Assembly (NCBI GenBank): GCA_004431415.1
Contig: QPMI01000533.1
Coordinates: 124,001 to 188,000, forward strand
Length of the DNA: 64,000 nucleotides
Source of the DNA: Cyanophora paradoxa CCMP329
Taxonomy: Eukaryota > Plantae > Glaucophyta
Direction of reading: 5' to 3'
A model generated the notes under the pieces. That model saw only the letters and a list, made by a program, of their open reading frames with translations. It made no database searches and was not told where the DNA came from. The translations under genes and the position numbers were made by a program. How positions within the stretch are numbered: position 1 is the first letter of the stretch; every line of letters starts with the position of its first letter. Positions 1,533 to 36,700 of the stretch are shown here, one piece after another.

Positions 1533-2297
1533 TATGGGGGGCACCTGACGAGCGGAAAGAAATATAATATATATATATATAAATGGGGAGACATTGAATT
1601 TCCGCATCACGTGTTAGGCCTGTAGCTAACTCCTGATCGTCACGCAGGTCTAGATCTGCGGCCTCTCAGAGTTTAACTAATCGCTAACTACAATCGCGGC
1701 AAGCTAGGCAAGCTACTGCTTACTGAGTCCACTGCTTACTGCCACTGCCGCTGCTTACACGAACACGAACGAACACGAACGACACGAACACGCATTATGC
1801 TGTGCGCCTGGTAATCATATATATCTAGTATATCGAGCAACGCAAGAATTGAACGTCGGAGACTGCGCATGCCCTGGTCTAAAAGGTGTCTGCAGAGAAG
1901 AATAAAAAAGCCTAGGTAGAAACCGTGAACCGTATCAGTTCCCAACTAGTACTAGTACTGAGCTGCACTGGATTATCTAAGATACGAAAATCGAAATGTC
2001 TTAGGCACACAGATCGCGGAGCCTCCGCAGAACGACTGCGAGTCCGACGACAACGAACGAGCACTGACACCGCGCTGGCCAGCGCGATATCGATTGCGGC
2101 GATCACCTCCAGAGCTGCTCCTAACGAGATCGAAGCAACGCAGGCCTAGGCAGCTACAGAAACCGAGTCGAAGCACTATATATATGGACATATACCGGCT
2201 TCCACCCGAACTAAGCTAGATACTGACGACAAGCGCACCAATAAAATATTATCGCTCACGATTGCAAGATGCGTATGCAATGAGAGAGAAGACGGAT

Positions 2298-11200: not shown

Positions 11201-14200
11201 TAAACTCCGCGTGAGGGCGGGGTCTGGGGGCAGCGGGCCCGGGCGCGATGCGAACCTGGAGGTGACTGCGACGGTCCAGGGCCAGCTTGGCGGGGCCAGC
11301 TGCAGGACGGCCCCGGTCCCGCCGGAATCGGAGCTCTCGGTCAGACACTTCGTCTCCCTGCGTCACCCAGTCACGATCGGTGGTTAAAGAAAGTCTTCGA
11401 GAGACTTCCAAACACGCACCAGATCGTGAAGTCGTTGAAAGGCTGCGCAGACGCAGTTTTGAATGAATGAAGACGGTAGGACTTGCGCGCTTATTCGAAA
11501 TTAAATGTGTCACCTGGATTTCGAGAGGAAACTTGAAGAGCTCAAACTCAAGGCCGGACTGAATGAGACGCGTCAGAAGAAAGGCGCCACCGTGCTTGAA
11601 GAAAGCTTAAGCGGCCGCGAACCGACTTGGGGGGCTTCTTTGCGATGGTGCTGAACTGAATGTTCATCGCGATGTATGGAATAATGCTGAAGGGGCGCGC
11701 TCAGCTGGGCTCGTCTCCAAATTTAAAGAAAGTGCAAGTCGCCGCACCCTGCCGCGATGCGGAAGTTGTTCACCCCTTTGCAGTCCCGACTGACCTACAA
11801 TCACGCGATGGACGGTGCCGCATTAGAGCCAGAGACGAGAATCGCGAAGAGACGAGAGAAGAGAGGTGGGAACCGGTGTCCAAATAAAGCCCACTCGGAA
11901 GGTCACGCCAGTCTGCAGGCCTGTGCACACACGGAGGGTTTGAATATTGAAAGGGCACAACCCCCCGACCCGGAGTCCAGCTGCAGTCTACTCACCCACA
12001 ACTTGAACACCTGCAAACCGAGCGCGCGCACATTGGATTAAACGTTTAATTCATTCGCGACAGGGCACGCGACCGCAGACATGCTCACCGTACGCGCCCG
12101 CGGTCAACTCAATCTCCGGCTCGAACAAGAGGTAGAATGCCAGGCCTAGCGGTAGAAACGCGATCACGCACATGGCAGCAGGGCTTCGGGGCGAATTAAA
12201 TGCATGCAAGCCACGCACTCAACTCGGGGGAGAAGGTCGGCGTCGGGACCTTGATGACAGGCGGCTTGTTGTTGTACCAGCCAACGTCTGGGGTCAAGCG
12301 ACCCCCAGAGAGCTTGGCGCCGGCCTGAACCCCGATCTCGATGCCAGCATCGAACACGGTCTGCGCGCAAATCATGCCCGCTTCGGGTGAGAATACGAAC
12401 ATGGCCCGGCTCACCGTGAGATCGAAATTGATCTCTCCAGAGAATCCTACTTTAATCTGAACAAGGAATAAGAAAATGCTTGAATACCCTTTGGCCTCTC
12501 ACGGACATTAATCTGCGACATAGGCAGGTTAGACAGACTAAACCCAGCGTGCATGGAAAGAAAGCCTATGTGTGCTCACGTTTGGCTGGAACGTGAAGAC
12601 GACGGGACCTGCGGGCGCGATTCAGACGAGCCGTGCCCCAGATTTGATTACCAAGCGAGTACTTGCACGCGCGAGCGGACCTGCAACGACCTGCTTTGCT
12701 GTGAACTGTTTGGTGAACACTTCTTTCAACACTTCGAGAGTGATTTCGATGTTGATTCGGAGCTCCCCACGAATGCGAGCTTTGGCCTCGGCAAAGACTG
12801 CGCGAGCAAAGCGTGTCGTCAATATACCTCCAGAGGCGCGACTCTGGGCGATCAATCAGGTGCGGGCAGATGGACCGTGGAAAGTGAACTCTCTGATATT
12901 GTAGTTAGATAGAACCAGCTTCATTTGTATGCCGACGCCACTGTAGAAGTAAAGCTGCTCAGGATCGAAGTACACCTGGGCCTTCACGTCGACACCGACG
13001 GAATTCGAGCCCAAGACTTCCTTCGCCCCTACAGACGCTTCGAATTCCAACCGAGGCCACTGCGCGAGAGACAAGACCGGTGTTCTCCATGAACACGCTG
13101 CGAGGTCGATCGAGTCTGCGAAGACAGGCACCTTCGCGGCCTGCCCTTTGAGGCGGTCGTCCCAGTTGAAAGAGACGCTGGCAATCGAGTTCCTGAGCGA
13201 CAGCTCGCACGATCCTGCACGGCTCGTCACGCGACCGGCGGCGCGGCCCCAGTCCAATGATCTCGTGGCCCGATATCGACTGCGACTCGCGCGCGCGATC
13301 GGGGCGAGAGTGCGCGCACCTGTCGCGCACTCGACGAGCGTGAGAATGGTGTTGATCGCCGAGACCGTTCTATCCACGGTCTTCGCGGCGATGTTCAGAC
13401 CAATGTTGACGACCGTGCCGGCTGCATTGACCACCCCCCTCAGCGGAGCGGTTAGGAAAGAGAGTTTGCCGCCCGTCAGGGAGTCGAACTGCCCGCAAAA
13501 TTAGACCAGTGATGGTTTCGTAAGCGGGCAGCGAGTTTAGGGAGAGAGCATGCCTTGTTGAGCCCCGTATTCACAGCCTTCACGGCGGTGTTGACCCCTT
13601 TCTGAGCGGCTGCGATGCCCGATTTGGCGGCGGAGCCGACTACGTTAACCGCCGTTTTCGTGACTTTCAGCGCCGATTGCTGTTCGCGAAGAAATTCAGG
13701 ATCGATCGCAGGCCTGATAATGATAGGAGTCGGCGTGGCTTACGATGCTTGCCAAGGCGCCCCCCCAGGCGGACTTCCCGATCGATGTCACGGCGCCCAC
13801 CGCCTTGTTCACAACTGCACCCGCGTTTAATTTCACTCACAGAAAGTCAAAGCATCATTTAATCGTGCGCGCAGTTTCCCGACCTTTTGTTACGGCCTTG
13901 CCGATTGCTTTGTGCACAAAGAGAAGCTTCCTCCCCCGAGAGGCCGGGTCCCTTGTCCGCGACGCTTTCTCCGCGTGATTCTCTGTGTATATGTTAATAC
14001 AAATGTCGTTGTGATGCTAATACGAAATTCTCTAAAGAAGACAGCAGCGAATTGGGTGGCCGAATTCGAATTCGAAGACGCACTGAGGCGATGAAACGAG
14101 TCCAGAACGCTCCGGTTTTGCGTTTGAGGCGACCTGGCCAGGGTCTCGAGCGAAGCGAACCTCGAGCTAAGGTCGCAGGAGAGTCACAAACGTGATAAGA

Positions 14201-15829
14201 AAATATAAAAGATACAAATGTCAAAAACCAGATGTCATAAAAGATATAAAGTCACGATACATTATGCAGATGTCAAAACAAGCCTAGGCCTAGGCCTGAC
14301 ACCCGGATCCGCGATTGCTATTTCAAGAAAGAAAGCGCGTGCGCACCGGAGGAGGTCGCGGGCGTCAAACTCGGATTGCGCCGCGTCGTCGTCGTCGTCG
14401 TCGCCGCCGTCGCCGTGGGCTTGGGCGTCGGGGCCGTCAGACGCGGGGCGCTTCCTCGCGGCGTGCGGCGCCCTCTTCGAGGAGCGCGAGCGCTCGTAGT
14501 AGTCCATCTCGAGGTGCTCGAAGATGTCGCCGAGGCCCGCCGCCTCGGCGCTGACCCGCGCGCACGTCCCGCGCAGCCGCTGCCCGCCGCTCGAGCTAGC
14601 GGCAAGCTCGCAGTCCGCCTCCGAGGCGACGCCCAGCACGCGGACCATCAGGCCGGCCAGCATCTCGTCCACCTCGCGAGTCTGGCGGCCGCGGGCCGGA
14701 ATCGACGCCGGCGCAGGGCAGCGCCTGCAAGAACGCGAGTGAGCCGAACGAAAATCTCCCCTGCCCAGCTGGCTGCTCTGCAAAATTTAAAAGTATGGAG
14801 GCGGGGGCGCACCACGTCTGGCCCCCGACCAGGATCCTGCAGAAAAAAGCACAGTTGAGAATTCGAAGAAAATAGTGCCCCCTGGGCAGCCCCCGCAGTG
14901 CTGGTGTCTAGAGACTGTGGCTGGTACTTAAGCTTCACCAAAAACAAATAGTGCAACAAGCGAATATTAGAATTAACGACGGGATCGAAAAACGATGTCT
15001 AAAATATTAAGCGGAAAAAGAAGTACTAGTAAATTTTCATTAGCATGATGTACACGAACGCATGCGCACGTTCCCGGGGCGATGGGCAGGCTTCGCCCTT
15101 TCTCCAGCAGAATATCAATGCGGTCGGGCGAGCCGGAGCAGTCGACGGCCAGAACCGCGGATTCAACGTCGAGGTCCACAACTGTTTAAGAGCCGGTTAT
15201 GGTCAGGAACGCTATTGAAAGGCACGTGCACAAGGAGTATAAATTTGATTATGATTTTAAAACCCGAATATACACGGGGGCGCGTCATGATCACCTGGTG
15301 CTTTCTGGACAGCGTTGAGAGTGTACCGCACTTGCAGCCCGGACAAATCCACGAAGTTCTTTGCGGTGTGCCAGTGGACGTGGCCTGTCGCGTGGTTCCT
15401 CGTCCGCTTCGCGTCCCAGCCAAGGAACCGATGAGGCGCCGCTCCGGTCGCCCGCCGCACGAAGGCCCCGGAGGGAGCTGCGGGCCGGGGCGTTCGCAGT
15501 GCTTAGCTAATAGCGAAGCTAGCGCTAGCTATAGTGCCGTCACATACAGACCGTCGGAAGTTTATGCAGGAGAGAATAGCGCGCGGGGCCGCGGATATAC
15601 AGATAAGCGCACCGGTACCTAGGGCTCCGAAGCCATCGTGCACGTGATAGCGAAGCGGCTGCGCTGTGGTCTCCGATTTGTGGCCAGAGGACTGCTTCGC
15701 CTCTCTGGCGTCGCACACGCGCGGCGCGGCCGAAGCCGCGAGGACCGCAACCGCAACGAGGAGGAGCGCCGGCACCGGCACGCGTCCGTATGCGGTCGCC
15801 GCCGCCGGCCGCTCGCGCCGCCGGCGCAT
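2298..15829 (-). CDS. Giant multi-exon secreted/cell-surface protein, copy L (signal peptide, FN3-like, PT linker, Kelch-like repeats, Pmp-like beta-helix, C-terminal hydrophobic/GPI-like signal)
   Basis: ATG 15829 MRRRRERP...[16 protein letters not shown]; FN3-like [11 protein letters not shown] and [15 protein letters not shown]; (TPSP)n linker; Kelch-like [24 protein letters not shown]; repeated GGA(V/I/L) and FxxN motifs ([26 protein letters not shown]); ends [32 protein letters not shown]. Could be more than one gene. Confidence 0.75.
9003..9195 (-). repeat. Coding Pro/Thr/Ser tandem repeat (TPSPSP linker)
   Basis: Repeated gggctgggcgtcggcgac / gggctgggcgttgcggat units; ORF 8732-9508 reads [25 protein letters not shown]...; shorter counterpart at ~40570-40725. 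Confidence 0.9.
14876..14944 (-). repeat. ~65-bp dispersed repeat, copy 2 (intronic)
   Basis: Reverse complement of 1467-1532; arm counterpart of 34762-34830. Confidence 0.85.
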
Positions 15830-16501
15830 CGTTAGCCGCGGGCTGTTAACGTCTCTCCGCGGCCCCCCTGCGCTGCCAGGCTGCACGCCGCGGCCGGGGC
15901 AAGAGGCTGGTTTGCTCTTTGCTAATATAACCGCTGAAGGGAAGCCGGGCGGCCGGATATATATCGATAGCGCAACCGCTGCGAGCCTGCGACGTATGTA
16001 CGTACGTAATAGTACGGTAATACTACGTATACTCCGCCGCCGCGCAACTACGTACGTACGTATACTACGGTATACTCGCCGCCTAGCCTTAGTAGCCAAG
16101 TAGTACGGAAGGGTCGGTGCGCGGCCGTGCGCCCACTGCGCCGGCGCCGCGGCCCGCGGCCGCGGGCTGCGGGCCGGCGCGGGTCCGGGGCCTCCGGGCG
16201 CGGCCGGCGGCCGCTCGCGATCGGACTCTATCATCGGAGGCCTAGGCTGTCCGACGGTCTCCGACCCTCGGACCGACGTCGACTCCGGATCTGAGTCTCC
16301 GATCGCGACGGTCGTTTCGGATCCGGGAAATCGGCGGGAATCCGCCGGGCCGCGGCCGGGCTCGGAGAGCCTCGAGCTCGGAGGCTGGTCGGAGCTGTCG
16401 TTCCGGGCTCGGAACCAGTTCGATTCCCAGTGACTCAGTGAAATTTCCCACTAGTACTCGTCGTCGTACTCGAAGTACCTTCTAAGAGGCCATTCCGAAG
16501 T

Positions 16502-17754: not shown

Positions 17755-19125
17755 ATCGCGATGAGGTCGACGTCCTCAGCTCCTCGCCCGTCACGCGCCC
17801 GCGCGCTCAGGCGCGAGCTGAATTCCAAGCCCAATTGCAAGACAGCCCGGATCTGACATCGGTTCTAATTAGATTCTAATACAAAAGCGCTCGCCAGTGT
17901 GGAGGATGCGGCGGAGGTGCCCCCCCGCCACTCGCGCCCGCTCCTCGCTCCGCACCAGCGCCGCCTCCGCCGCCTTCCGACGCGAGACTGCCCAGGCTTG
18001 GTGGCCGCCGCGGGCCGGCCGGTTTGGGTCCAGGCTTCGCGATCGGAGGATCGGAGGATCCGGATCATACCGCAGTTGTTGAGTAGAAGGGCGGGGAAAG
18101 AAGGGGGGCCGGGGTGTGGGGGGGGGGGGGGGGGGGGGAGGGGGAAGGAGGGGAGGCCTAGGGGGAGGGGGAGGACTAGGGGATGAGGAGGATGAGGAGG
18201 GGAATCGGGTGGGGGGGGGGGGGGGGGCGGGCGTTGGCGGACCGTCCCGCGACGCGCTCGCACGCGTACCCCCCTGCAGGTCGGCATGCTGATACCACGA
18301 GGGGGGAGGGATATAATATGCTGGTTCGGAGGGAGAAGGGGGGGCGGGGTGCGCAGGGCAGCCTGGCAGGGTGACGGACCGCCGTTTGTAATTATTATAT
18401 TAATGTACTCGTGCAAATTCGAATTCGGTATGCTTATGCCAAGCTGCGGGGTACATGTACAGAGATGCGGACGCAGATCTAGATTTAGAGGGTGGGGCGG
18501 GGCGCGAGCGGAGCGCTAGCGCTAGCGCGGGCCGCGGCCGGGCGAGCTCGAGGGGCGGCATAAACCCCTAGTTTGAGGTTGTCGCCTCGAGCTCCGATCC
18601 GCCCTCCGATTCAACCGAAACGAAGATGCGAGCGACTGCAGGAAAGTCGGCGGATGTACATGTGCCACGGTGATCGGGCGGTCGCCGAGCGCGCGTAGGC
18701 CTAGGACGCTAACGCGGGCGGCCGTGAACGGACGCGTTCCGTCGTGGTCTGCAGGCCAGCTGCAGGTTCTCCAGGCGCTGATCTATAAGCTACGCGATGG
18801 CCCAGTTGCTGTGTGATCATGATCATGAGCGCCCCGGCCCCGCCGCGGCGCCGCGAATTCGAATGCGAAAGCGCGTGCGCTCGAGGTGAGCCGAAACAAC
18901 TCCGGATCCCCGGAGCGGGAAGTTTCACAGCAATCATGATCACCTCGCGATCGACTCAGCGGCGATATCGCGATAGTAAAAATAGAGCTTCGAAGCTCGA
19001 AGCCGTACGAACCGTAGTACTACGGTAGGTCGTACGCGTGGACCGGCGTACGCGTGGTCCGGAGTCCGGAGTCCGGAGTCCGGACTCGCCGTGGCCCAGT
19101 CAGTGGAGACTCTGAGACCACGAAG
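17755..19125 (-). pseudogene. Heavily deleted inverted relic of the histidine kinase gene (50758-62700)
   Basis: Reverse-complement matches: ~18560-19125 to 51080-51445; ~18250-18475 to 52285-52395; 17991-18036 to 54122-54157; 17885-17990 to 55503-55607; short fragments at 17755-17800 to ~56092-56460. Degenerate peptide QLGHRV...LQTTTERV is frameshifted. Confidence 0.85.
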
Positions 19126-19457
19126 TCTGTGACGGACTAGCCTACTGTAGAACTAGTTGGGGAAGGGAAAATCACTTCCCCTGTCCCTGTCCCTCGGGCC
19201 CAACCCTACCCCAAATCCCATTTCCCCGACCTCCGCAAAACCCGGGCCGCGCGGTACACCCTGAAAGCCCATCCCCAGGGGACCCCGAAACCGTGTCTCC
19301 CGGTCCCGTCCGACCAAAGGGTGATCCAGGAACAGGCACCAACACCCGGGACAAAAACGGGTCCAGCGACGCACAGGGAGCAGATATACGGGCCAGACCA
19401 GTTCGAGGTCGTTGCGCGCATCATGCCCGACATTCCGTTCTGCGAGAGCTAGGCCGG

Positions 19458-19565
19458 TGTAGTGCGCCAAATAAAATGGCGCGCCATCTTATTTTTATGG
19501 CGCACGCTTTTGAGCCATCGCAGAAAAAAATGCGCCGGCCAGCGCAGCCGGAGCTTGCGTTGGGG
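19458..19565 (+). repeat. Left TIR
   Basis: TGTAGTGCGCCAAATAAAATGGCGCGCCATC...; first 73 bp identical to the right TIR, then 1 substitution and 1 indel. Confidence 0.97.
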
Positions 19566-19681
19566 GGGTTACTACGACTCGCAGCGTATGATGCAATAGT
19601 ACTATACTACTAGGCTAGTAGGTAGTGCGCACAGCAGCAGCCGGCAGACAGCACTGCGGCAGCGGGCGGGGCGGTCCGCAC

Positions 19682-22600
19682 ATGGCGCCCAAGAAGGGCA
19701 AAGTGGCCAAGCAAGGGCCTTACTACGACCAAAGGTTCGATACTCTTGAGCTGTGATGCGAAGGCGCGCACCGGGCGCCGCGCTGATCATGATGCCCGAC
19801 CGCGCGTGCACCTTGCCCGTGACGCAGCGACGGTGACCATCGAGGTCGAGGGAGGCACGGGATGGCCTGCGGAGCTCATGAAGGATGCGGAGCGGCAGCT
19901 CCGCTTCACGCAATCCGTCGGACCTGCGGGCCTGGACCTGTACTTCTACGATCCGGAGGCGGACACCCTCGATCTGAGGACTGCGTCTCGGAAGCTGCCG
20001 AAGCTCAGTCCCGGATGTTTCTTCTACGTCGTGCGGCGGGACATGCAGCCAGCGCACGAGGACGGCGACAGCAACGCCGACCCCGAACTTGTGAAGCTCA
20101 TGAAGCGCGGCAAGGCGCAGCAGCCGGTTCAGGCGGCGACTTCGTCGGACTCGGCGCAGCTGAGTTCGCTCGTGGAGGTGTTGCGCTTGCAGGTCCAGAC
20201 ATCCGTCGGAGCTGCGCTCGCCTCTGCAGGTGAACCTCGAGCAAAGAAGAGGGCGGCGACAGGCGCGAACTACCTGAAGGAGGACACGGATGGCAAGCGC
20301 GGCACTGGGGACTGCAACACGGCACGGGACGTCGTGCGGCTACTGTGGGACGAGCCGATCGAGGGATCGGGGGGGGAGTACACTCCGGAGACATGCCCGC
20401 GAGCCTGGCTGTTTCTGAAGGTGCCGTCCCTTCATTTCAGTTATCGAGCTAGAATTTAAGTTTATATCTCGAGCTCACGCTCTCTCGCGGATGCAGAAGT
20501 GCGGGGCGGCACCCGCAAAACGCACGACACGCTGAGCAGACTGCGGCCGCTGCTCACCCCATTCGACAAGAAGGACCTCAGCCACCTTCAATCCCTCACG
20601 AGATGCAAGAAAGAGATCTATTTTCATAACATTGAGAACATGTGCGTGCGTTGAAGATGGGGCAACGATGCCACGCCCCTGATGCGTACACTCCGAACAG
20701 ACTGTGCATTCTAAGGATGAGGAAAGCGGAGCAGGAGGTGCCGGACGACCACTACAAGCTTGAGGGCATCTCGCGACCCGGCATTCTGGATGTCGCCGAC
20801 TTCATCCTAGGGACTCACAAGCTGACGGCGATGGAGGAGAACGTAGCCGGCTGGATGGATGGCAAGGACAAGGTGGACAGCGGAGAGTGAGCAAGAGTTC
20901 CATTATTTCGAGCAACACATACGAAACTGACCGGTGGAAACAATTTACCACGCAGGTACAAGGCGACCGGGGCGAAGAGGAAGGCCAATTGCAAGAAGAA
21001 GCAGGAAATCGAACATCACGACTCGTGCGAAGGTACGCGACGCTGTTCCAACGCAATCCCAACGCATATTTCAACACCTCTCAACGCATACGTTGATTGA
21101 CATACGATGAATAGTGTTGACGTAATCAACTTCCCTCCGTGTTGGCACAAGGCTCACGCGCACTTTTGCACTTGCAGAGCCGGCAAGGAAAGTGGCAGAG
21201 CAGAAGGGCAAGGCACGCGTCCGCGCCCCCCCGACAGACGAAGGTGCGCAATGTGTACAACGCATGCACAACGCATCGAAAACGCAAGCGTTGGTATTGC
21301 GTTGGTTGATTGCGTTGCAAAGATACAGCGCAATTTTCGTTGATTCCGTGCCCGCAGAGTCCGACGAGGAGGATGACGTAGAGGACAAGCTCGAGGACGA
21401 CAACGAGAGCGGGAATGAGGACGAGGACGAGGGCGAGGACGAGGGCGAGGACGAGGACGAGGACGCAGAGGCGGCAAGCTCGAGGAAGCGCAACCGCAAG
21501 GCAGAGACGAAGGGTCAGGAGGCGAAGCAGGAAAAGCAGAAAGCAGGGAAGCGCAAGAAGCAGGAGAAGGAGATGGAGAAGGAGGCGAAGAAGCCCAAGG
21601 CCGCAGCAATGACAGAGAAGGTGCAGTCTTAAAAACGCAATCTGTGCCAGTCCCGGGCATAGTGCAGAGTTTTAATACCGCAGCACAGAAGGAGGCCGAG
21701 GCGAAATCGAAGGAGAAGGGCAAGGCGGCGGCAGCGAAGAAGGCCGCAGCAGAAAAGCAGGCCGCAAAAACGGCGGAGCAGGCAGCAGCACAGGAAAAGG
21801 TGCAGTGTTGCGCGGCACTCTCTGCGAGCGTTCCGGGCCTGGGGAACAGTTTTAATAACGCAGCGCAGAAGGAGGCCGAGAAGAAAGCGAAGGAGAAGGA
21901 GAAGGCGGCGGCAGCAAAGAAGGCTGCAGCCGAGAAGGAGGCCGCGAAAACGAAGGCGCAGGCAGAGGCTGCCGCGGCAGCACAGGAGAGGGTGCAGTTT
22001 TTCGCGTCACTCTGTGCGAGCGCCTGGCATAGGAAAGAGTTCTAATCACGCAGCGCAGAAGGCGGCCGAGAAGAAGTTGAAGGAGAAGGACAAGGCGGTG
22101 GCAGCGGAGAAGCTGGCAGAGGCGCCTGCAGAGAAGAGCCGAAAGAAGAGGAAGGCTGCATATGAGCTGGCGGCGGAGCCAATAATCCCAAATCCCCGAC
22201 AGCTGCCGCCCTTCCCAAGCTTCTCAATCCTGGAAAGCAGAGCAGCTTTCGGCAGCTTCGCAGCAAGGCAGAGCGCGCAAAAGCCAAGTCAGGCGGAGAG
22301 AGTCCACTCGCCCCCAAGATACTCCCTCCCGCCCGGGCCGGTTGGCCTACGTAAACCAGGAAACCGGGTGCGCACGGGCAGTCCTCGCAAATTATTATAC
22401 AATCGGTACTGTAATAAATCAGACTGTAATTATACATGTGCAGCTCGAACTCTACAGACGGCGGCTCGATCCTGGAGCTTTCATCCAAACCCTTTCTCAG
22501 GCGAGCATAGCATTGCAACGCATACTCAACGCTTGCGTTGTACATACGTTGATGTAGCGTTGTTGTAAATCAGAACGGAGAAACCTCTCAGTCTCAGTCG

Positions 22601-23998
22601 TGCTCAGCACTTCATCCGCGAACAAGAGCACATAAGTGCATACGATGCGAAGTCGTCGTATCTGTGCTTCACAAAGCCCAACGACGACCTCCCTCCGGGC
22701 TCGGAGCAAGTTGTTGCGGTATGGGATCACCAACCAGGGGTGACGTCGCACCCCTGGAGGCTGTGCAACACGCACAAGTACGCCCAGCTCGAACCCCGTC
22801 TCGCAGCGGAGACATCGTCGGGGGGAGGCCCCCTCGTTGTGGTCATTGAGTGGCCGCGGGATGACCCCATCATCATCGGGGCCGCCATTAAACAGGGGGA
22901 CGAGGTTGTCCAATATATGACGCCATACATATTTCAGCCAGTCAAACAGGATGACGGTGGCAGGAAACGGGGCAAGCGTGAAGTCGTCCCCGTCGCCGTC
23001 GATGACACATTTCTAGACGCTGTCCGAACCTGCAGCACTCCCACGCGGTATGCAATGCCCCATTCACGTCACAAATATTCAGATAATGTCTGCAGGTTGA
23101 ACGTCGCAGAAGGAGCCGCAGAGGATGCCCGCCCGCAACTCTCGAGACCCATTCTGAGGCGAGCATAACTTTTCAACGCTTACACAACGCTTTCCAGCGC
23201 TAACGTTGATATTGCGTTGCCGTGTTTCAAATGCAGAACGGACAAAAAGCTGTATGTCCAGCCGTCTCCGGAAGACGGCGGCGGTGTTGTGTGCGTGCAA
23301 CGGCATATTTTGTGGGCATTGCGTTATTACTTACACGTCTTGGCAGAGATGTGAACCACGCGTTGAGGCCTCACCCGATTTTGTGGCACCTGGGTGGGGC
23401 CGCATTTCCAAGAAGGCCCTCGCAGATGAGGTGGCAACGCACATCTGGAACGGACGGAAACAGATCGTGAAAACAGTTCTCAAGCTGCGATGGCCGCCGC
23501 ATTTCGATCTCGAGCCACGAACGCGTCTCGTGGTTCGCGGCAGGAGGAGTACGGAGAGAGAACACACCATCCTCGTGCCATTCGACCAGTCCAAGACAGC
23601 ATACGGACAGGCACCCGGGCGCGTCCTGCACTTCGACACATCCACGGTTTACTACGTGCAGTACGCTCAGGTAGAGCTCGATTGGGATGCCGAGTACGAA
23701 CTCTTCCTAGCCCTGCAGGTAACTACGCAATTCCAATGCATGCGTTGCGTTTCCGCTGCTCACGTGTTGGATGCAGCACGAGGAGACGGACGCCGAGGGC
23801 GAGATGACTTTTGCACTTCGGAATGGCCCCGCGGTCACTGTAGGAAAGGTGGAGGATCGCAGGACCTTCCGCCGTTCTATCTCGTACCGGCCACACCCGC
23901 GGCCGCTGCGTGGCGAAATATCGGACTTCAACGAGGGAACAGTGGAGGGCAAGGACAACTGGTGGCACAAGTGGGACATCTTCATGCTCAAGAAGTAG
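19682..23998 (+). CDS. Transposon accessory (cargo) gene, multi-exon, unknown function; basic N-terminus, acidic tract, K/A/E-rich repeats, C-terminal globular regions
   Basis: ATG 19682 MAPKKGKVAK; exons include TVTIEVEGGTGWPAELM..., ESDEEDDVED..., KAAAAKKAAAEK repeats, WRLCNTHKY...VVVIEWP, and a last exon ...KDNWWHKWDIFMLKK* (TAG 23996-23998); GT-AG and GC-AG introns. Confidence 0.7.
21570..22130 (+). repeat. Tandem exon+intron units (~180-190 bp, three intron copies)
   Basis: Related introns GTGCAGT...TAATNNCGCAGC(A/G)CAG start at ~21620, ~21800 and ~21992, each followed by a K(E/A)AE..K.KEK.KA.AA exon. Confidence 0.85.
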
Positions 23999-24352
23999 AT
24001 TCTGTTGAAGTAGAAGTAGATTAATGTGCAGAAAGTAGCCATTGTGCAACTGCTTCAGCTTGTGTTCTCTGCACAATTTACAAGTCTTACTTTACAAGTC
24101 GTACTTGTGGTACTGATGGGGATGAAAGTTGAAGTGTGGGCAGGCTGGACGTGCTCACAGTGAAGTGGATACTGCTTAGTCGAGTGGGATGGAAATTCAA
24201 AGGATTTGGCCGCTCGAACTCGAAGGATGAGTTTAGTAGGTAACTCAGTGACTAGATCTGTAGTCACAAGTACTAGACAAGTACTCGAGAAGCTCTGAAG
24301 CAATTTGTAGTATTCTAGAGTTCTCAGATTTGTACTACAATCATGCGTCCAA

Positions 24353-24540
24353 CGATCATGAGTCATGAGGCTAACTAGTCGGGTTCTAAAGTTGAACTAC
24401 GATCATGAGTCATGAAGCTTAGTAGTCCGGTTCTAAAGTCGAACTACGATCATGAGTCATGAAGCTTAGTAGTCCGGTTCTAATGTCGAACTACGATTAT
24501 GAGTCATGAAGCACATTAGTCTGGTTCTTAAAGCGAACTA
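24353..24540. repeat. Four tandem ~47-bp repeats between the convergent transposon genes
   Basis: Unit CGATCATGAGTCATGAAGCTTAGTAGTCCGGTTCTAAAGTCGAACTA x4 with few substitutions; no unique spacers. Confidence 0.92.
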
Positions 24541-24876
24541 CAGCCAGGGTTCTTGAAACGCACGCACACAAGTAGACTAGCTATAGTCGTGTTCAAGATC
24601 TAAAATTGTACTATGACAATGAATGTAGTATCAATAAAGTATAGTAGTAGTAGCAATAAAGTATAAATTATAGTACATGATTCCTAAAGAAGAAGAAGAG
24701 TATATATGTATAAGACACGCCCCAGCCGAGCGCGCGCTGCATGCAGCCTGGCAGGACACAACGCATTCCCAACGCATGCGTTGCGTTTCCGTTGCACACC
24801 CGGTTCCCTCTCTCAGTTCCCTTTCAATTTTCGCATCTCTGTCAGTTCCCTTTCAAGCAAATTTCTGACAAACACT

Positions 24877-27800
24877 TCATACACCATGCCTAGTGTTGGC
24901 CATATTCTGCTGGAATGTCTGCATCATCATCTGAAAGTGCTGCATCATCTGCTGCATCTGCTGCATCTGCTGCTCCATGCTGGGTGCCGGGGGCATAACT
25001 GGGCGCACAGGGCTCGAGGACATAGCTAGCCTAGACTGAGGGGCTAGTGGGTAACATGGTGCTGCCAAGGCGGCTTCAAGCTCTGCCTGCGTGTAACTTG
25101 GCCCGGAGTTGGGGAGGACAGGCACCCCGTGTGTGTCCCGAGGTGCGGGCCCAACTCGAACTGGCCCACGAATGGGAGAGCTGGATCCAGAGGATGGCAG
25201 GGTAGAAGAAGAGAAAGACGGCCCCAGAGGGAGTGGGGACCAATAACGGGAACCGCCCCTGGGACTGGGCCAAGACCCTCGCAATTGGGGCTGACCCAAC
25301 AGGGGCAGCACCACCCCAGGTGCATAGTGCGGCAGAGGTGGCGGGCGTGGGCCGGGCGGAGCCGCAGCACGGGCCGGGCCGGGCGGGCCGCAGCAGGAGA
25401 CGGGGCGGCGGGGCCGCAGCAGGAGACGGGGCGGGCGGGGCCGGAGCGCGGGACAGGCCGGGCGGGGCCGCAGCAGGAGACGGGGCGGGCGGGGCCGCAG
25501 CAGGAGACGGGGCGGGCGGGGCCGGAGCGCGGGACGGGCCGGGCGGGGTCGCAGCAGGAGACGGGGCGGGCGGGCCGCAGCAGGAGACGGGGCGGGCGGG
25601 CAGGAGCGCGGGACGGGCCGGGCGGGCCCGCAGCAGGAGATGGGGCAGGCGGGGCCGCAGCAGTAGACGGGGCGGGTGGGCCGGAGCGTGGGCTGTGGCT
25701 GCTTGGGCTGCACGTGCTGCGGCTGCTTGGGCTGCACGCTGAGCGGCATCCTCCTCCTCTTTCTTGAGATAAGCTAGAATTCGCAGCTTGAGAGCCTCCT
25801 TGTTACCTGTGTGCGGCAGGTTTGCAGCACGGAGGAATGCCTGCAGGGGCTTGTTGGTGGTGTGCATGCCAGGGGCCAGAAGCTGCGAGAAAAAGGAAAT
25901 TAGAAGAGGAAGTCCAACGCAACTGCACCGCAAGCGTTGAATTGAAGAACGCAAACGTGTGCTTTGCGTTGCTACAAAAACGCACCCGTCGTATCCCATC
26001 AACAGACGGGATGGGGCCGTACTTGTCGTCGACAGGGCCATCTGCTGTTGCATTGTCGGCGACGATCGATTCTGCCGTTGCGCCACGCTGGCGCGGAATG
26101 ATTTTCTCCCGACACTGGCCGTCTCCGGGTAGATGCGCTCACGCTTGTTCTTGCACCCGTACTTGCTGCACTGGCAGCTCGAGCAGCACACCAGGCCGCT
26201 TGTGAAACAGCCGCATTTCTCTGGAAGGCAGCCATCCCTGCACTTGCACGGGTCCACGTCGAGACCGGGGGCCTGGCCACAGAAGCTCTTGAATGCTGTC
26301 ATGAGAGGAACGGTGCCGTTCATTATGTTGTTCGCACGGTTCTCCTCAATTGTCTTCCAGATTGTCTGCATACCTGCACCAGTTTTTTGATGAGTGTGCA
26401 ACATTCGTGCAAATGGGACTACCCCTGCACGTACCGCCCACGAGGTTCATGTTGATCAATTGTGCTCCCTGAATGGGAGTGTCAATGAAACCCGCCATCG
26501 TCCTGATCGTGTAGAGGCCATGCGGGACGTCCACCACTTCTGTGACGATCCCAGGTACCCTTGCTTGTAGGAGGACGTGCATGCCGAGCTGTTTGACAAG
26601 GACGGCCACACGATCCCCGATACTGTAGATAACAGGACCTGCTCCCTGCTTCTCCGCGCACGCCTTCATCTGGTCTCTGTACACGGCAAGCCGTGCGCAT
26701 GCCTGGACATTCCCGAATGCACGCACAAACTGATCGATCTGTCCAACGCATGCGTTGAGAATGCGTTGGATGAGAGTGCGACAAAATTTGCAATGAATTG
26801 ACGGCACTTACTACGTAGAACACCGGGATATCCTTCAAGAGCGGGCTCTCCGCCCTCTGCAGAAGAGCGTTGGCGATATCTTCTTCGTACTTCGCCATGT
26901 CATCGCACACTCTGTTCACTTCCTCCATGTTTGCAACCTGACAACACAATTACCAACGCATGCGTTGGGATGCGCAGACATTCCGTTGCGCACTCCGAGG
27001 AGGTCCTCAATGTCCTTCTCGGTGTACGGCCTTGTCGGATCCGACGGTGGCTCAATTCCCAAAGGCCTTCGTGAAGGTCTGCGCCCGGTCATGGCCTCGA
27101 TGGGTGTCATCTTGTGCCCGTTCGCGAACTTCATGCTGTTGTGGGACTCCATTGCCTGAGAATCCAGCATCGATCAGTGCACTTGGAATTTTCAAATGGG
27201 GTATGGAAAGGATTTTAAATACATCGGGAATGGCTAGGGCCCAGTTCGCCCAGTCCTCCGCATTCTGGTTCCGGCGTTCGTAGCAAATAGCCTCGAGCGT
27301 CGGCTTCGAGTCCCTGTTCGCGCGCTCCACAGAGCCCTGGTGCTCTGGAGTGTACGGTTTCCCGTAGGCGATGGACGAGTTCGGGTAGGCCGCCATAAGG
27401 ACCTTCATGATCTGCCATACTCCGTTAACATAATTAATATTGAAGTTTACAAGAGATAACGGGGGATTTCACATCATTCTTGAACTCCGATCCGTTGTCG
27501 CAGGACAGGATTGTGCATGCACCGAAGTAGGCAAATTTCTCGCGAAGACGATCAGCAACTTCGCCTGCGCACTTTGATTCGCAAGCCTCCAAGATGAGGA
27601 AACGAGTGTAGTGGTCCTGCGTTCGCCGTTGTTCGTTACCGGATGCAGAAATCTGCGCATGACCGTGCCGAAAACTGACCTTTATGGCCAGGACAAATGC
27701 CCAGAATCGCGGAATGACGTCCGTGACAAAGACCGTCTTGTAGCAGCCCGGAAATTCGGGATCCGGGATTTTCTTCTCGTACCGGCACACGTGCACTGCT

Positions 27801-29350
27801 TGCTCCCAGTACCAGACCCTCTCGAGCTCGCCTGAGCTCTCATTCCACTTCCACCCCGGCAGCCACTCCTGCAACTCCCAGGTAAATTTTAACACGCGGC
27901 CAGGCGCATCAATAACAACATCTCACCATGCGGGGGCAGGGGCCCCATGCCTTGGGCATCTCAAAGAAGTCGACAATTGCCCGATCCCAGAAACCAATCA
28001 CCTTGATTGGATGGAGGATCCCGTCGGGCTGCCTCCTCTTGTTCTTGAGCTTGCAGACTGGACTGCAGCCCCATCCCCACGACCGCAGGTGAGTCTTAGT
28101 CACGATTGGTTTGTCGGTGGACAGAAAACTCACCAAATCTTGACGTAGATGCGGACCAGGTAGCGAGGAATCGCGTACCTTTGCTTCGCATTGTTGTATA
28201 CACCGGTGCCACCTTTGTGCCCGCTCTCAAGGTGTTCGCGCTGCGCACGATCATGACCGCGTCACAAACAGTGCAATGCAGTGGACATAAAAATTAAAAT
28301 GTATTCTGTTCAACGCATGGTCAACGCATGTGTTGAGAATGTCCAACGCTAGCAACCCAACGCTTGCGTTGAAGATGCGTTGCGCGTGCGCAGAGAATTG
28401 CGTTGTACCGCGATCGCACCTGGATGCAGATGAAAATGTCCTCGTCACACACCAGCTCCCTGCCCAGTGGGGGGCGTCGCCCGAATTTCCTCGCTTCAAG
28501 CGGTTGTCAACCTGCTTCTCCACCACCAGCCGAAGCTTGCGCCTTGGCCGCGGGTTGGGCATGGCGAGCTCCTCCGCTGTCAGGTTGTCTGTCGGATCTG
28601 GAACCTCGCGCAGCGTGTACTTCCCCTCATGAACTCGCGCCAATTCTTCACCCGCTTCACATGCTCTGGGCTGCCGCTGGGCTCGGGCGCGTCCGGGTTT
28701 TCGAGGATGTACTTAACGTGTTCGATGTCGGCGCGAGATAGCAGCACCGCTCCGGGCTTCACACGCTGTATAGCGGCTCGATATTCTTCGAAAGTTACGC
28801 GCTGCACTGATGCTGCTGGGACCGGTTCAGCGCCTCGGGATTCGGCGAACATCCGCTGGACTCGGTGGCGAAATTCGGTGGTGTCGATGCGCTTGCCGGC
28901 TGCTGCGGCCGAGCCCTTCTTTTGTTGTTGCTGCCTCGAGCTCGAGCTCGAAGCCGCTGCCTCTGCTGGCTGTGATTCTGAAGCTGCTGCGCCATCTGCG
29001 CCCACAGCTGCAGGTGCTGGTGGCTGCTTCCGAGGGCGCCCGCGCGGCCGCGGCGGTTCACTAGTATTTGGCCGCTTTCGATTACGCGGCTTACTGCTCG
29101 AACTCGCCGCCTGTCCGCTCGAGGTGGACGGCGCCTGCTGGCCGCTCGATGGTGCTGACTGCTGTTGGTTGCTCGATTGCGATGACGATGCCGCTGCTGC
29201 GTTGCTGGGCATGTCGATGCGAATGTTAGGAAACAGAGTCTTGCACAGGAAGTTATTGCCGCAGAGCCCGGACAGATTCTCTGCGGGTGGACACCTGCAT
29301 TCGAACTTGTTGGGAAGGTCTCTGACATCTGGATGCTCCCACCACCTCAT
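24877..29350 (-). CDS. Ginger2-type DDE transposase/integrase (HHCC-like, rve core, Cys-rich CXC-like, SAP-like, Pro-rich and Q/M-rich tail)
   Basis: HLESGHKG and CSPVC; catalytic D in AIVDFFEM (~27970), D in LSCDNGSEF (~27498), E in HQGSVERANR (~27326); DHYTRF; CKCRDGCLPEKCGCFTSGLVCCSSCQCSKYGCKN; LQAFLRAANLPHTGNKEALKLRIL. The reading frame shifts inside the GC-rich repeat at 25370-25690 (decay or sequencing error). Start and stop approximate. Confidence 0.88.
25370..25690 (-). repeat. GC-rich minisatellite (PPAPSPAAA-type coding repeat)
   Basis: Repeated gggccgcagcaggagacggggcgggcg units interspersed with gccggagcgcgggac. Confidence 0.9.
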
Positions 29351-29498
29351 TGCTGATGTGCCTAGGGCCGCGCCTTCGGGCTCGGTGCGCGCGCGCGGCT
29401 CCCCGACCGCTTCCCGCCAGTGCGGTCCTATACCGGTAGCCCGGCGGTAGGCTATAATGATAGGCGATTTCGATCGCGACAGCTAGCCTAGCAGTACT

Positions 29499-29607
29499 CC
29501 CCAACGCAAAGCTCCGGCTGCGCTGGCCGGCGCCTTTTTTTCTGCGATGGCTCAAAAGCGTGCGCCATAAAAATAAGATGGCGCGCCATTTTATTTGGCG
29601 CACTACA
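29499..29607 (-). repeat. Right TIR
   Basis: ...GCGCGCCATTTTATTTGGCGCACTACA followed by TSD GCCGG. Confidence 0.97.
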
Positions 29608-30817
29608 GCCGGGCGCGAGCGCGGTCTGAGGAAACCTCTTAAGGTACCCCCCGGCCGCTTTCTCCCCCGGGCGCCGCAGCTCGGCTCGGCTCAACAATGG
29701 TTACGCCTCTCGCGCGCGTGACAGTTTGCTGTGGCTCAGCGGCTAGCCGTGCCAGCCGCGCACGCTTCACCCGCGCCAACCGCGCACGCCCCGACGGAAT
29801 TGCACAAGCCGGCCGCAAGCCGGCCGCACTTGGCCGTCTATGCCACTTGCAACAAGCCGACGCCCGCGCGGCGCGCGCGCCGCGCGACGCAGAGCCCCCG
29901 CGCGCGCGCGATGCGCATGCCTGCTGCAGCCGCTGATCATGAGCTGGCCCGCTGCGCCGCTTTCTGAGCGGAGCGTGAGCTTGAGCAGCGTCCCCGCGCC
30001 CGCGCCCAGATCGCGCGGAGGCCCAGGCCAGGCCACTCGTGCACCCGCCACGCCTCACGCGCGCGACGGTCGCGGGGCATGCGCAGGAGCTCGAGCACGT
30101 CCACATGTACACAAGGTTAACGTTCAATTTGCGAGCCATCCCCCGGCCCGCCCCCGGGGCTCGCGCCCTATATAGCTAGGCCCTGAGGCCTACCTCTAGA
30201 GGACAGCTCGTCTCGATCGCGAGGACAGCTCGCCTGGCATGGCCAGCCTGGCCTCGGAGCCGGCCCGGCGGCTCGCGCCCGCGCGGCCGGCCGCGGCCAC
30301 CGCGCGCCTTCATGATGATCAAGGCTTCTTAAGCTTAAGCTTAAGTACTAGTCCCTGCTCTCTGCATCTAGATCTTGGATTCGCCGAGTTTAAAGACCCT
30401 TCCCCGGACCCAACTGGCAACTGACGCGCGCGGCAAGTCAGTGGCTCTTTTTACTGGCCTTCTTCGGATTCGAACCGGGGGTCCACGGACTTCGGTGTGT
30501 GTTTTCCCTTCCCCGGACCCCCGCGGCGGCGTGCACGAGCACCACCCCTTCCGAGCGCGCGCCGCAGCGGGCCCTTTATTAATTTAGCACAGGAAAATAT
30601 TTAGTACTTCGTCAAAACTGCAACTTTAGCAGCTGGTAAAATTTTTAGAAGGTCAGTCTTCGCATGCGCAGGGCCCGGGTTTTGTATGGCAAAGATGGGA
30701 CTACCCCTACAAATTCTCGGCTTTAGCAGGCGGGAAATATTTATAGCAGATCGCCCAAAAACATTTAGAACTATAAATATGCGGCCCACTAAAGATTTCT
30801 AGCTCTCCAGTAGTAGA

Positions 30818-32885: not shown

Positions 32886-33731
32886 GGTACCGGTACGTGG
32901 TACCTCCAACTAGGTACACCGAGTAGAACTCGAAGTTAATTTAAAAAACAATGTTCAGAAAAAAGGCTCTCGCCTCGAAGAAACGTCTCTAAGTAGCTTC
33001 TTCAAGTAGGAATCGGTGTTATTTTTCACTAAAGAGGTCTTGAAACTGAAGCCTCCGAGGCCTCCGAGGCTCCGCCCCTGACGGTCGGTCGTGCAGGGCC
33101 GGGCCCGGCGCGGGCCACACTGTGCCAGGCTGGCAGCTGAGGCTGCCAGCCCCACTGCCAGGGCCCAGCCGCCCAGGGAGTGGCAGCACTGGCAGGGACT
33201 CCTAGTAGTACTCGTCCTCGATATCCCGGAGTCCGTCGATATGCATGCATATATATATGTATGCATTTGCCCCATGGCCATGGGGTTCGCCGAGTCCGGA
33301 TCCGCCGGCGCCGGAGTCGAGGACTAGAGCGAGCGGACTCCGGGACTCTTAGATCTCCGGCCGGTGTCGGACTGCCAGGCTGTCACAGTGTGCCGCGCAG
33401 CCACGTACTGAGTGCATGCGCGAGCGGCGCTCCGGCCGCGCTGCTCTAGAACTGCCTACAGCCAGGCCTACTTGTACTGCCGATCCTAGGCCTAGATCCC
33501 ATCGGATAGCTTCGCCGATCGCGAGTTGCACGGCGGGGGAGTATACGTACGTATACTACGAACGTACGTCGCAGCGGTTGCGCTATCGATACATATCCGG
33601 CCGCCCGGCTTCCCTTCAACGCCGTGACGGTTATATTAGCTAAGAGCAAACCAGCCTCTTGCCCCGGCCCGGGCGTGCAGCCTGGCAGCGCCGGCGGGCC
33701 TCGGAGAGACGTTTACAGCCCGCGGCTAACG

Positions 33732-36700
33732 ATGCGCCGGCGGCGCGAGCGGCCGGCGGCGGCGACCGCATACGGACGCGTGCCGGTGCCGGCGCTCCTC
33801 CTCGTCGCGGTTGCGGTCCTCGCGGCTTGGGCCGCGCCGCGCGTGTGCGACGCCAGAGAGGCGAAGCAGTCCTCTGGCCACAGATCGGAGACGACAGCGC
33901 AGCCGGTCCGCTATCACGTGCACGATGGCTTCGGAGCCCTAGGAACCGGTGCGCTTATCTGTATATCCGCGGCCCCGCGCGCTATTCTCTCCTGCATAAA
34001 CTTCCGACGGTCTGTATGTGACGGCACTATAGCTAGCGCTAGCTTCGCTATTAGCTAAGCACTGCGAACGCCCCGGCCCGCAGCTCCCTCCGGGGCCTTC
34101 GTGCGGCGGGCGACCGGAGCGGCGCCTCATCGTTTCCTTGGCTGGGACGCGAAGCGGACGAGGAACCACGCGACAGGCCACGTCCACTGGCACACCGCAA
34201 AGAACTTCGTGGATCTGTCCGGGCTGCAAGTGCGGTACACTCTCAACGCTGTCCAGAAAGCACCAGGTGATCTTGACGCGCCCCCGGCCCGTGCATATTC
34301 GGTTTTAAAAACATCATACAAAGAATTAGATTCATACGTATACTCCTTGTGCACGTACCTTGCAAAGGCTTTCAATCGCGTTTCTGACCATGACCGGCTT
34401 CTTACAGTTGTGGACCTCGATGTTGAATCCGCGGTTCTGGCCGTCGACTGCTCCGGCTCGCCCGACCGCATTGATATTCTGCTGGAGAAGGGGCGAAGCC
34501 TGCCCATCGCCCCGGGAACGTGCGTTTATGTTTATATCACGCACATAAATAATAGTTATAACTAATTATAACCTCGTTTTTTACGCTCAATATTTTTTTC
34601 GAGCCGTGCTTTTATATTCAATCGTTGCATTTTGTCTTCTGCTAAACTGCGTGTACATCATGCTAATGAAAATTTACTAGTACTTCTTTTTCCGCTTAAT
34701 GTTTTAGACATCGTTTTTCAATCCCGTCTTTAATTCTAATATTCGCTTGTTGCACTATTTGTTTTTGGTGAAGCTTAAGTACCAGCCACAGTCTCTAGAC
34801 ACCAGCACTGCGGGGGCTGCACAGGGGGCACTATTTTCTTCGCAATTCTCAACTGTACTTTTTTCTGCAGGATCCTGGTCGGGAGCCAGGCTTGGTGCGG
34901 CCCCGCCTCCATATTTTCTCTAGAGCAGCCAGCTGGGCAGGGGAGATTTTCGTTCGGCTCACTCGCGTTCTTGCAGGCGCTGCCCTGCGCCGGCGTCGAT
35001 TCCGGCCCGCGGCCGCCAGACTCGCGAGGTGGACGAGATGCTGGCCGGCCTGATGGTCCGCGTGCTGGGCGTCGCCGCGGAGGCGGACTGCGAGCTTGCC
35101 GCTAGCTCGAGCGGCGGGCAGCGTCTGCGCGGGACGTGCGCGCGGGTCAGCGCCGAGGCGGCGGGCCTCGGCGACATCTTCGAGCACCTCGAGATGGACT
35201 ACTACGAGCGCTCGCGCTCCTCGAAGAGGGCGCCGCACGCCGCGAGGAAGCGCCCTGCGTCTGAGGGCTCCGCGACCGACGCCCACGGCGGCGGCGGCGA
35301 CGAGGACGACGACGCGGCGCAGTCCGAGTTCGACGCCCGCGACCTGCTCCGGTGCGCACGCGCTTTCTTTCTTGAAATAGCAGTCGTGGATCCGGGCGTC
35401 AGGCCCAGGCCTAGGCTTGGTTTGACATCTGTATACGTATAATGTATCGTGACTCGCCTGCGACCTCAGCTCGAGGTTCGCGTCGCTCGAGACCCTGTCC
35501 AAGTCGTCTCAAACGCACAACGGGAGCGTTCTGGACTCGTTCCATCGCCTCAGTGCGTTTCTGGTCTCATTTCGCTTCTTTCTTCTTGAGAGCACTTATC
35601 TCGTGATCGAAAATTTGCACACAGAGCATCTCGCGGAGAAAACGTCTCGGGGAAATGACCTGGTCGACGTCTATCGGGGCAGGAAGCTTCTCTTTTGTTG
35701 CAAAAGTTTCGTCAACATTGTGAAGAAAGGCGTAAATGGTCAGAACCGCGCGCGGGGTTCATTCTCTTATTTCCGCGAGCCGAACGCACGCGCAGTTGTG
35801 ACGAAGGCGGTGAGCTCCGTGACATCCATCGGAAAGTCCTTGTGGGGGAACGCCATGGCAGGCATCGTACGCCACGCCGACTCCTTTAATTACAAAAGGC
35901 CTGCGATCGATCCTGACTTTTTTGGGGAACAGCAAGCGGCAATGAAAGCCACGAAGACGGTGGTTAACAAAGCCGGCTCCGCCGCCTTATCGGGCATTGC
36001 AGCTGCGAAAAAGGGGGTCAACACCGCCGTGAAGGCTGTGAATACGGGGCTCAACAAGGCATGCTCTCTCTCTAAACTTGCTGCCCGCCCTAAAATCTAT
36101 CGCTAATGTAATTTTGAGGGCAGTTCGATTCCCTCACGGGCGGCAAGCTCAAATTCCTTACCGGCCCGCTGAGGGGCGTGGTCAATGTAGGTGGCTTGTT
36201 GATCAACACTGGTCTGAACATCGCCGCGAAGGCCGTGGATAAGACGGTCTCGGCGATCAACACCATCCTCACGCTCGTCGAGTGCGCGACAGGTGCGCTT
36301 TCACCACAATCGATATCTATCTCGAGCCATAAACAAACGAAATCTTGGCAACGGAACGGCACGCGTGACAAGACAAGCCGCGCAGGATCGTGCGAGCTAA
36401 CGCTCAAGAAAACGATTTCCAGCGTCTCGTTCAACTGGGACGATCGCCTCAAAGGGCAGGCGACAGAGGTGCCTCTCTCCGCAGACTCGATCGACCTCAC
36501 AGCGCGTTCATGGCGAACACCGGTCTTGTCTCTCGCGCAGTGGCCTCGGCTGGAATTCGAAGTGTCTGTAGGGGCCAACCAACTCATGGGTAAAAGTTCT
36601 GTCGGTGGCAGCGCGAAAGCCCAAGTCTACTTCGACCCCGAGCAGCTCTACTTCTACAGTGGCGTCGGTGTCCAGTTGAGGCTGGTTCTGTCGAATTACA

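Follow-up and report, generated by a model that had tools for sequence, protein, structure and literature searches.

A 64,000-nucleotide stretch of the Cyanophora paradoxa CCMP329 genome (assembly GCA_004431415.1, contig QPMI01000533.1, positions 124,001 to 188,000; hereafter the window) carries a Ginger-like DNA transposon of 10,150 bp at 19458-29607. The element has terminal inverted repeats (TIRs) of ~108 bp that are 97% identical, with TGTAG..CTACA ends, and is flanked on both sides by a 5-bp target duplication (a single insertion). It contains two converging genes, ORF2 on the plus strand and an integrase-type transposase on the minus strand. Eleven dyads of the form CAACGC-WW-GCGTTG (two mismatches or fewer) were found in the element, all of them inside 10 of its 25 modelled introns. 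Most dyads are accompanied by extra CAACGCAW units 11 bp off, and the resulting clusters are referred to as arrays. The element is laid out as follows.

19453..19457: left target-site duplication GCCGG.
19458..19565, plus strand: left TIR of ~108 bp, with TGTAG start, three ATGGCGC repeats at 19476-19503 and an array half-site at 19556-19562.
19683..23998, plus strand: ORF2, an orphan gene with 14 introns and ~1,080 codons, frameshifted in the window copy.
24352..24541: 47-bp unit repeated four times in tandem, in the gap between the converging genes; array motif absent.
24877..29350, minus strand: integrase-like transposase gene with 10 coding introns and a start at 29350 or 29212, frameshifted in the window copy.
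29499..29607, minus strand: right TIR, with an array half-site at 29502.
29608..29612: right target-site duplication GCCGG.

The enrichment of the array motif was evaluated against shuffled sequence and against the 54 kb of flanking sequence in the window, which served as host control. CAACGC occurs 35 times in 1,951 bp of intron, compared with 3.65 ± 1.9 expected from 2,000 dinucleotide shuffles (maximum 10). Its density is 17.9 per kb in the introns, 0.85 per kb in the remaining element and 0.52 per kb outside the element. The motif CAACGCAT is present in 17 copies in the element introns and in none in the window's other 62 kb. The array motif was picked after inspection of the data; it is also the top-ranking 6-mer and 8-mer of the element introns. 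An initial annotation of the window had seen no arrays beyond the element, and this was borne out in the flanks, where only three isolated dyads (two mismatches or fewer) were present. The ~11-bp periodicity that it claimed also held, as 14 of 22 same-orientation site pairs are separated by 11, 22 or 33 bp (null mean 1.04, maximum 7 in 20,000 randomisations). The arrays are thus a real and highly non-random feature that is confined to the element within the window. They occur about once per kilobase, more evenly than 10 random introns would (P 0.02-0.03, post hoc).

The individual sites agreed with those listed earlier. Perfect 14-mers were confirmed at 24770, 26744 and 26954, and variant dyads at 21082, 22527, 23195, 23734, 25926, 28322, 28358 and 21280 (previously given as 21281). 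The flanking half-sites exist as described, and the run 21049/21060/21072/21082 has steps of 11, 12 and 10 bp. The arrays had been placed in about ten introns of both genes; 10 introns do carry them, and the other 15 of the 25 are free of arrays. The array-bearing introns are listed below.

21033..21177, plus strand: ORF2 intron 4, dyad 21082 with lateral units at 21049, 21060 and 21072.
21244..21357, plus strand: ORF2 intron 5, dyad 21280 with two lateral units per side.
22501..22573, plus strand: ORF2 intron 10 (GC-AG), dyad 22527, paralogous to intron 12.
23159..23236, plus strand: ORF2 intron 12 (GC-AG), degenerate dyad 23195.
23719..23776, plus strand: ORF2 intron 14, dyad 23734, flanks in common with the 24770 site.
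24748..24799, minus strand: putative 3' untranslated region (UTR) intron downstream of the transposase stop, perfect dyad 24770.
25883..25985, minus strand: transposase intron 10, dyad 25926.
26703..26811, minus strand: transposase intron 8, perfect dyad 26744.
26938..26993, minus strand: transposase intron 7, perfect dyad 26954.
28241..28419, minus strand: transposase intron 1, two dyads at 28322 and 28358 with lateral units.

The 25 modelled introns comprise 14 in ORF2, 10 in the transposase and the putative 3' UTR intron. They were compared with published AUGUSTUS models of sibling copies, which are predictions trained on RNA-seq rather than direct reads, by locating the flanking upstream and downstream exon peptides separately within these models. 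Twenty-one of the 25 introns were identical to the published ones. The earlier statement that all sites lie in predicted introns stood for most of them: 8 of the 10 array-bearing introns agree exactly with the sibling models, and for transposase intron 8 the published models take a nearer acceptor (~26739) that leaves the array intronic. The array at 24748-24799 lies beyond the transposase stop codon, in an intron that is putative only.

A single array half-site closes the inner edge of each TIR, as had been noted before, 121 bp upstream of the ORF2 start and 152-290 bp upstream of the transposase start. The half-site 8-mer occurs in 0.6% of shuffled TIRs. The TIRs have a repeated motif of their own, ATGGCGC, which is present three times per end and is distinct from the array motif. 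Two ATGGCGC units per TIR form a 12-bp palindrome (19458-19510 and 29560-29607), and these are candidate transposase sites. Because the TIR has its own repeats, the array motif would be left for the second protein, which points weakly to ORF2 as the array binder. The 47-bp tandem repeats between the genes, each with a pair of TCATGA palindromes, are a further candidate for a protein-binding or termination element, and AATAAA occurs beyond them at ~24633 and again at ~24655.

Database queries were made with single exons, unspliced window stretches or published protein models. ORF2 exon 11, searched against 1.84 billion representatives, gave two matches, each 100% identical and both Cyanophora paradoxa gene models. 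Near-identical ORF2 or transposase models are present on at least 11 contigs of the Cyanophora paradoxa assembly, the two genes adjoin each other on at least five, and 18 of 19 sibling models have 93-100% of their residues covered by exact 8-mers from the window. These matches thus indicate a young, multicopy and stably two-gene family, and the transposon is a recently active member. Single-base frameshifts occur in both genes at homopolymer runs (~19755, 20505, 28640, 28490 and others) and differ among sibling models. Their location in homopolymers and their difference from copy to copy suggest that those in the window copy are long-read assembly errors. The short, dense introns of the window agree with those described for Cyanophora paradoxa (PMC6704402), where CpG methylation stands at 32% and is concentrated on transposons and silent genes (PMC12344493). 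The observed/expected CpG ratio is 1.00 in the element and ~1.2 in the flanks, which is consistent with past methylation of the element.

ORF2 consists of an N-terminal region, a middle in which an acidic stretch of 46 residues (59% D/E) gives way to a long, basic, Lys/Ala-rich one, and a beta-rich C-terminal region. The acidic/basic middle is compatible with a chromatin-associated protein but is not evidence of one. Matches of the predicted fold to C2/Ig-like domains (E>0.02) were discarded, the structural models being unusable. Exons and introns 6-8 (21598-22112) form a triplicated 180-190-bp unit of ~78% identity whose introns are free of arrays. The ORF2 copy on tig00022080 has ~15-20 substitutions plus indels relative to the other copies, next to a nearly identical transposase model, and is possibly a chimera or a faster-evolving ORF2.

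The transposase has an H2C2-like zinc finger, a D..D(36)E core, and CXC-like and SAP domains. The core matched rve with an E value of 3e-5 (below the gathering score), retroviral integrase structures with 2e-4 and phage transposase families with 5e-8, and its D..D(36)E arrangement was also seen in a sibling transposase model. Integrase_H2C2 was found at E 0.001, under the cut-off, with the H..H..CxxC residues present. By inspection, the sibling model has no GPY/F and no YPYY motif. When the core stretch was searched against the protein set, viral contigs and metagenomes, no relatives outside its own family were retrieved. The gene also contains a ~60-residue Trp-rich insertion between the first catalytic Asp and the next core strand (27680-27940, minus strand), ~13 copies of a 27-bp Pro/Ala-rich repeat in its 3' region (25349-25687) and a Gln/Met run before the stop (24919-24978).

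Judged by its termini, the length of its TIRs, the 5-bp duplication and the missing GPY/F motif, the element fits best with Ginger2/TDD (PMC2836005). It shares with this group the TGTNR ends, a TIR length within the 45-300 bp range, a 5-bp duplication as in TDD-4/5, the integrase-type DDE core, a putative H2C2-like finger and the lack of GPY/F and YPYY. However, at 10.15 kb it is larger than the listed autonomous Ginger2 elements (2.8-6.7 kb), and it differs in its second, convergent gene, its 24-25 introns, the ~60-residue insertion past the first catalytic Asp and the intronic arrays, which are not described for that group. Its target GCCGG (a single site) is GC-rich, in contrast to the AT-rich RTATAY of Ginger2/TDD. 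Because of the GC-rich target, and because no relatives outside the family were retrieved to group it with, the element is filed as Ginger-like only. Membership in Ginger1 was rejected, as the 5-bp duplication contains CCGG but differs from the 4-bp CCGG/CCGT, GPY/F is lacking and the C-terminus carries CXC-like and SAP domains rather than OTU/Ulp1. IS3EU/GingerRoot was rejected on the duplication (5 bp versus 6 bp), the ends (TG..CA versus mostly TA..TA) and the presence of an H2C2-like finger, where that group has no HHCC.

The anatomy of the arrays was examined by folding all 11 on their axis. CAACGCW is nearest the axis and CAACGCAW lies one turn outward, with three unconstrained bases between them; counted outward from the axis, each arm is conserved at positions 1-7 and 11-18 and free at 8-10. 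Complementarity of the spacer positions 8, 9 and 10 across the axis is seen in just 3, 2 and 2 of the 11 arrays, which is chance level. The dyad centre is W-W in all 11, and in four it is non-complementary (AA or TT). A methyl-adenine (ApT) reading of the centre was dropped, as AT is found in only six dyads. WW follows all 34 exact hexamers in the array introns, 18 of which are sense and 16 antisense. The distance from dyad to splice site is not fixed and ranges from 21 to 90 nt for donors and from 22 to 123 nt for acceptors. This geometry appears to be the signature of a double-stranded-DNA protein site with lateral extension on one helix face. A DNA-protein site is favoured over an RNA hairpin because of the non-complementary spacers, the WW centre, the equal use of both strands and the variable distance to splice sites. 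The initial annotation had proposed that ORF2 or the transposase binds the arrays cooperatively; its DNA-protein site gains support from the 8-bp units, the free 3-bp spacers, the W-W centre and the strand symmetry, and its reading as a whole is partly supported.

The arrays are probably bound by a protein that the element itself encodes. We infer protein binding, ORF2 as the binder and an anti-silencing effect from the sequence and by analogy, and tentatively favour the account in which the arrays are cis-acting platforms for an element-encoded protein, most likely ORF2, that marks the element's own copies and counters their silencing. A dimer would sit on the central CAACGC-WW-GCGTTG dyad and further subunits would be added outward, on CAACGCAW units spaced by one helical turn, and good binding would be limited to clustered and phased sites, of which the host flanks have none. 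The sites would lie in introns because these are the sole free space of a gene-filled element. Platforms spread about every kilobase, together with the single site at the inner TIR edge just upstream of each gene, would keep the copies active, or activate them, in spite of silencing by CpG methylation in the host, in the manner of VANC and TnpA in plants. ORF2 is ranked first because the TIR holds a different motif for the transposase, because the array motif recurs across the interior and just before the start of each gene, and because the host methylates CpG on transposons; the array motif includes a CpG. The company that ORF2 keeps with the transposase on at least five contigs supports its role. 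A more specific version is doubtful, though it may be correct: ORF2, of unknown fold, would polymerise from the dyad in 11-bp steps on intron platforms that spread by copying, as an independently evolved system of self-recognition and anti-silencing.

Several observations weigh against the favoured account. ORF2 gave no Pfam (E≤1), PHROG or PDB match and no homologue outside its own family, and single-sequence AlphaFold models of both halves were unusable (pLDDT 35-36). CpG retention near the arrays was not significant, the host control spans only 54 kb, and copying of cassettes between introns, described below, reduces the 11 dyads to about seven independent lineages. In addition, the transposase brings CXC-like and SAP modules of its own. 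Cognate copies can be activated by a transposase acting alone (10.64898/2026.08.24.746577), so that the transposase stays in play as the binder.

The origin of the arrays bears on whether they have a function at all. The cassettes at 23734 and 24770 share 20 of 32 non-motif columns (p ~3e-5 before correction for 110 comparisons), and the 26954 cassette aligns with both when gaps are allowed. ORF2 introns 10 and 12 are 74% identical across ~100 bp, with downstream protein that is not detectably related and no internal protein repeat. The intron with the 23734 cassette is on the plus strand and those with its relatives are on the minus strand; cassettes were therefore copied between introns at the DNA level, irrespective of transcript orientation. 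The array introns had been called otherwise dissimilar, which is true of most pairs, with nothing in common outside the motif (mean 8.3 of 32 columns, chance level), but not of these related ones. Such shared flanks, and the fact that 6 of 15 one-mismatch variants are CpG transitions, would suit arrays that are now functionless, either left behind by an independent foldback miniature inverted-repeat transposable element (MITE) or Introner or spread as a neutral cassette through ectopic copying. That explanation is improbable, however: most pairs are alike only in the motif, whose positions and phase have remained sharp, and this speaks for selection on motif and phase rather than one recent neutral spread, and in addition the ends of array-bearing introns are not common to different introns, none of the arrays occur in the host flanks and a half-site is built into the TIRs. 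A role of the arrays at the RNA level, as hairpins in the pre-mRNA or RNA-protein sites through which splicing of the element introns is controlled, is very improbable. All arrays are intronic, and their introns have RNA folding z-scores of -0.6 to -2.7, but array-free introns reach -1.7 and -1.9, and the predicted folds are modest with units paired out of register. Core mismatches (two G-U, three A-C) show no G-U bias on the sense strand and Rfam gave no match for the arrays; with the non-complementary spacers and the lack of a fixed splice-site distance, the hairpin alternative raised earlier is weakened.

Other explanations accept a bound DNA site and assign it differently. Internal transposition enhancers are known in phage Mu and the P element. 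The arrays could be such enhancers, with which the transposase (through its CXC-like/SAP domains), alone or with ORF2, folds the 10-kb element, pairs its ends and favours full-length copies. The half-site retained inside both TIRs, the even spacing of the arrays and the extra DNA-binding-type modules of the transposase agree with this. We nevertheless regard it as unlikely, as the TIR has just one half-site, at its inner edge, its multi-copy motif is a different one, and the arrays are distant from the ends, most needing no TIR proximity. A transcription or chromatin factor of the host might instead be what the arrays recruit, in which case they would be intronic enhancers or insulators of host origin; the geometry is silent on the identity of the binder, and ORF2 has no recognisable DNA-binding domain. 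That origin is quite unlikely, given that neither arrays nor CAACGCAT occur in the 54 kb of intron-rich host sequence, which includes several promoter regions, and that the 14-mer and its variants were absent from the literature searched (coverage incomplete).

Pattern scans of public collections for the arrays gave no viral, four metagenome and three prokaryotic-genome matches, which is near chance level. The metagenome matches were rejected as relatives of the arrays; they look bacterial, and three of the four are one locus. This apparently bacterial, prophage-like locus has 11-bp-spaced units on either side of a tRNA-like sequence, beside an integrase-like gene, and the units are possibly integrase arm sites unrelated by descent to the Cyanophora arrays.

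The transposon is inserted in the 17.5-kb spacer between the arms of a 14-kb inverted duplication of intron-rich host genes (2026-16049 and 33524-48062, 77-94% identity by block). The position of the duplication centre near 24770 was dismissed as a coincidence, as the centre shifts by hundreds of bases along the arms. An intron-rich host gene at ~51500-62000 is, by eye, a candidate sensor histidine kinase (HELRTPLN-like motif near 57410). Inverted partial copies of the 51.5-62 kb gene lie left of the element (18564-18951 versus 51134-51446, 71%; 17886-17997 versus 55496-55607, 93%) and are perhaps a decayed paralogue. A 70-bp sequence found in both orientations at 1463-1532, 14876-14948 and ~34790-34830 is a possible small mobile element.

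The closest parallel, which the initial annotation had also drawn, is with the VANDAL elements of Arabidopsis, whose VANC21 protein has a 9-bp binding motif that occurs in introns, between genes and in terminal regions (PMC5735166). The comparison is apt in the sense of a system that may work alike in a host that methylates CpG on transposons (PMC12344493). Both have a transposase plus an accessory gene and a short motif enriched in non-coding DNA of the element itself and multiplied by local duplication, and both hosts silence transposons by DNA methylation. The likeness is one of layout, not of family membership: the Cyanophora element has an integrase-type core and VANDAL a Mutator-type one, and ORF2, with no Pfam family at E≤1, shows no similarity to VANC or any other catalogued family. 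The Cyanophora arrays are built around a dyad and keep a strict 11-bp phase; the targets of VANC are given as tandem repeats, in a paper that mentions neither palindromes nor spacing (PMC5735166). The host is a glaucophyte, and in the Cyanophora element binding and demethylation are hypothetical. TnpA of Spm/CACTA is likewise an accessory protein that acts on cognate copies and requires high-density clusters of a short CG-containing motif (10.64898/2026.08.24.746577); its motifs are concentrated at the termini and its effect is terminal, whereas the Cyanophora sites lie inside the element, in introns, apart from a single half-site in each TIR. Introner elements (PMC9860276) resemble the arrays as intron-sized cassettes apparently copied between sites, but the array introns have no shared ends and no TIR or target-site duplication at the intron ends. 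No end-to-end similar introns, as in Introners, were found in the host genes of the window.

No description of a two-gene Ginger element with intronic arrays was found in the literature (coverage incomplete, Repbase not included). Leaving any anti-silencing function aside, the literature searched describes no young, two-gene family of Ginger-like elements whose accessory protein is an orphan. The tested cases of transposon-encoded, sequence-specific counter-silencing found there are from plants (VANC and TnpA). If the more specific version of the favoured account is true, such a system would exist beyond land plants and in a superfamily other than Mutator and CACTA. As a candidate from a distant algal lineage and another transposon superfamily, the element has an unusually explicit code of an 8-bp unit, a dyad and an 11-bp phase. 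With this code, and in part with methylome and RNA data that already exist for Cyanophora paradoxa, the repeated origin of anti-silencing, and family-level specificity from one short motif, would become directly testable.

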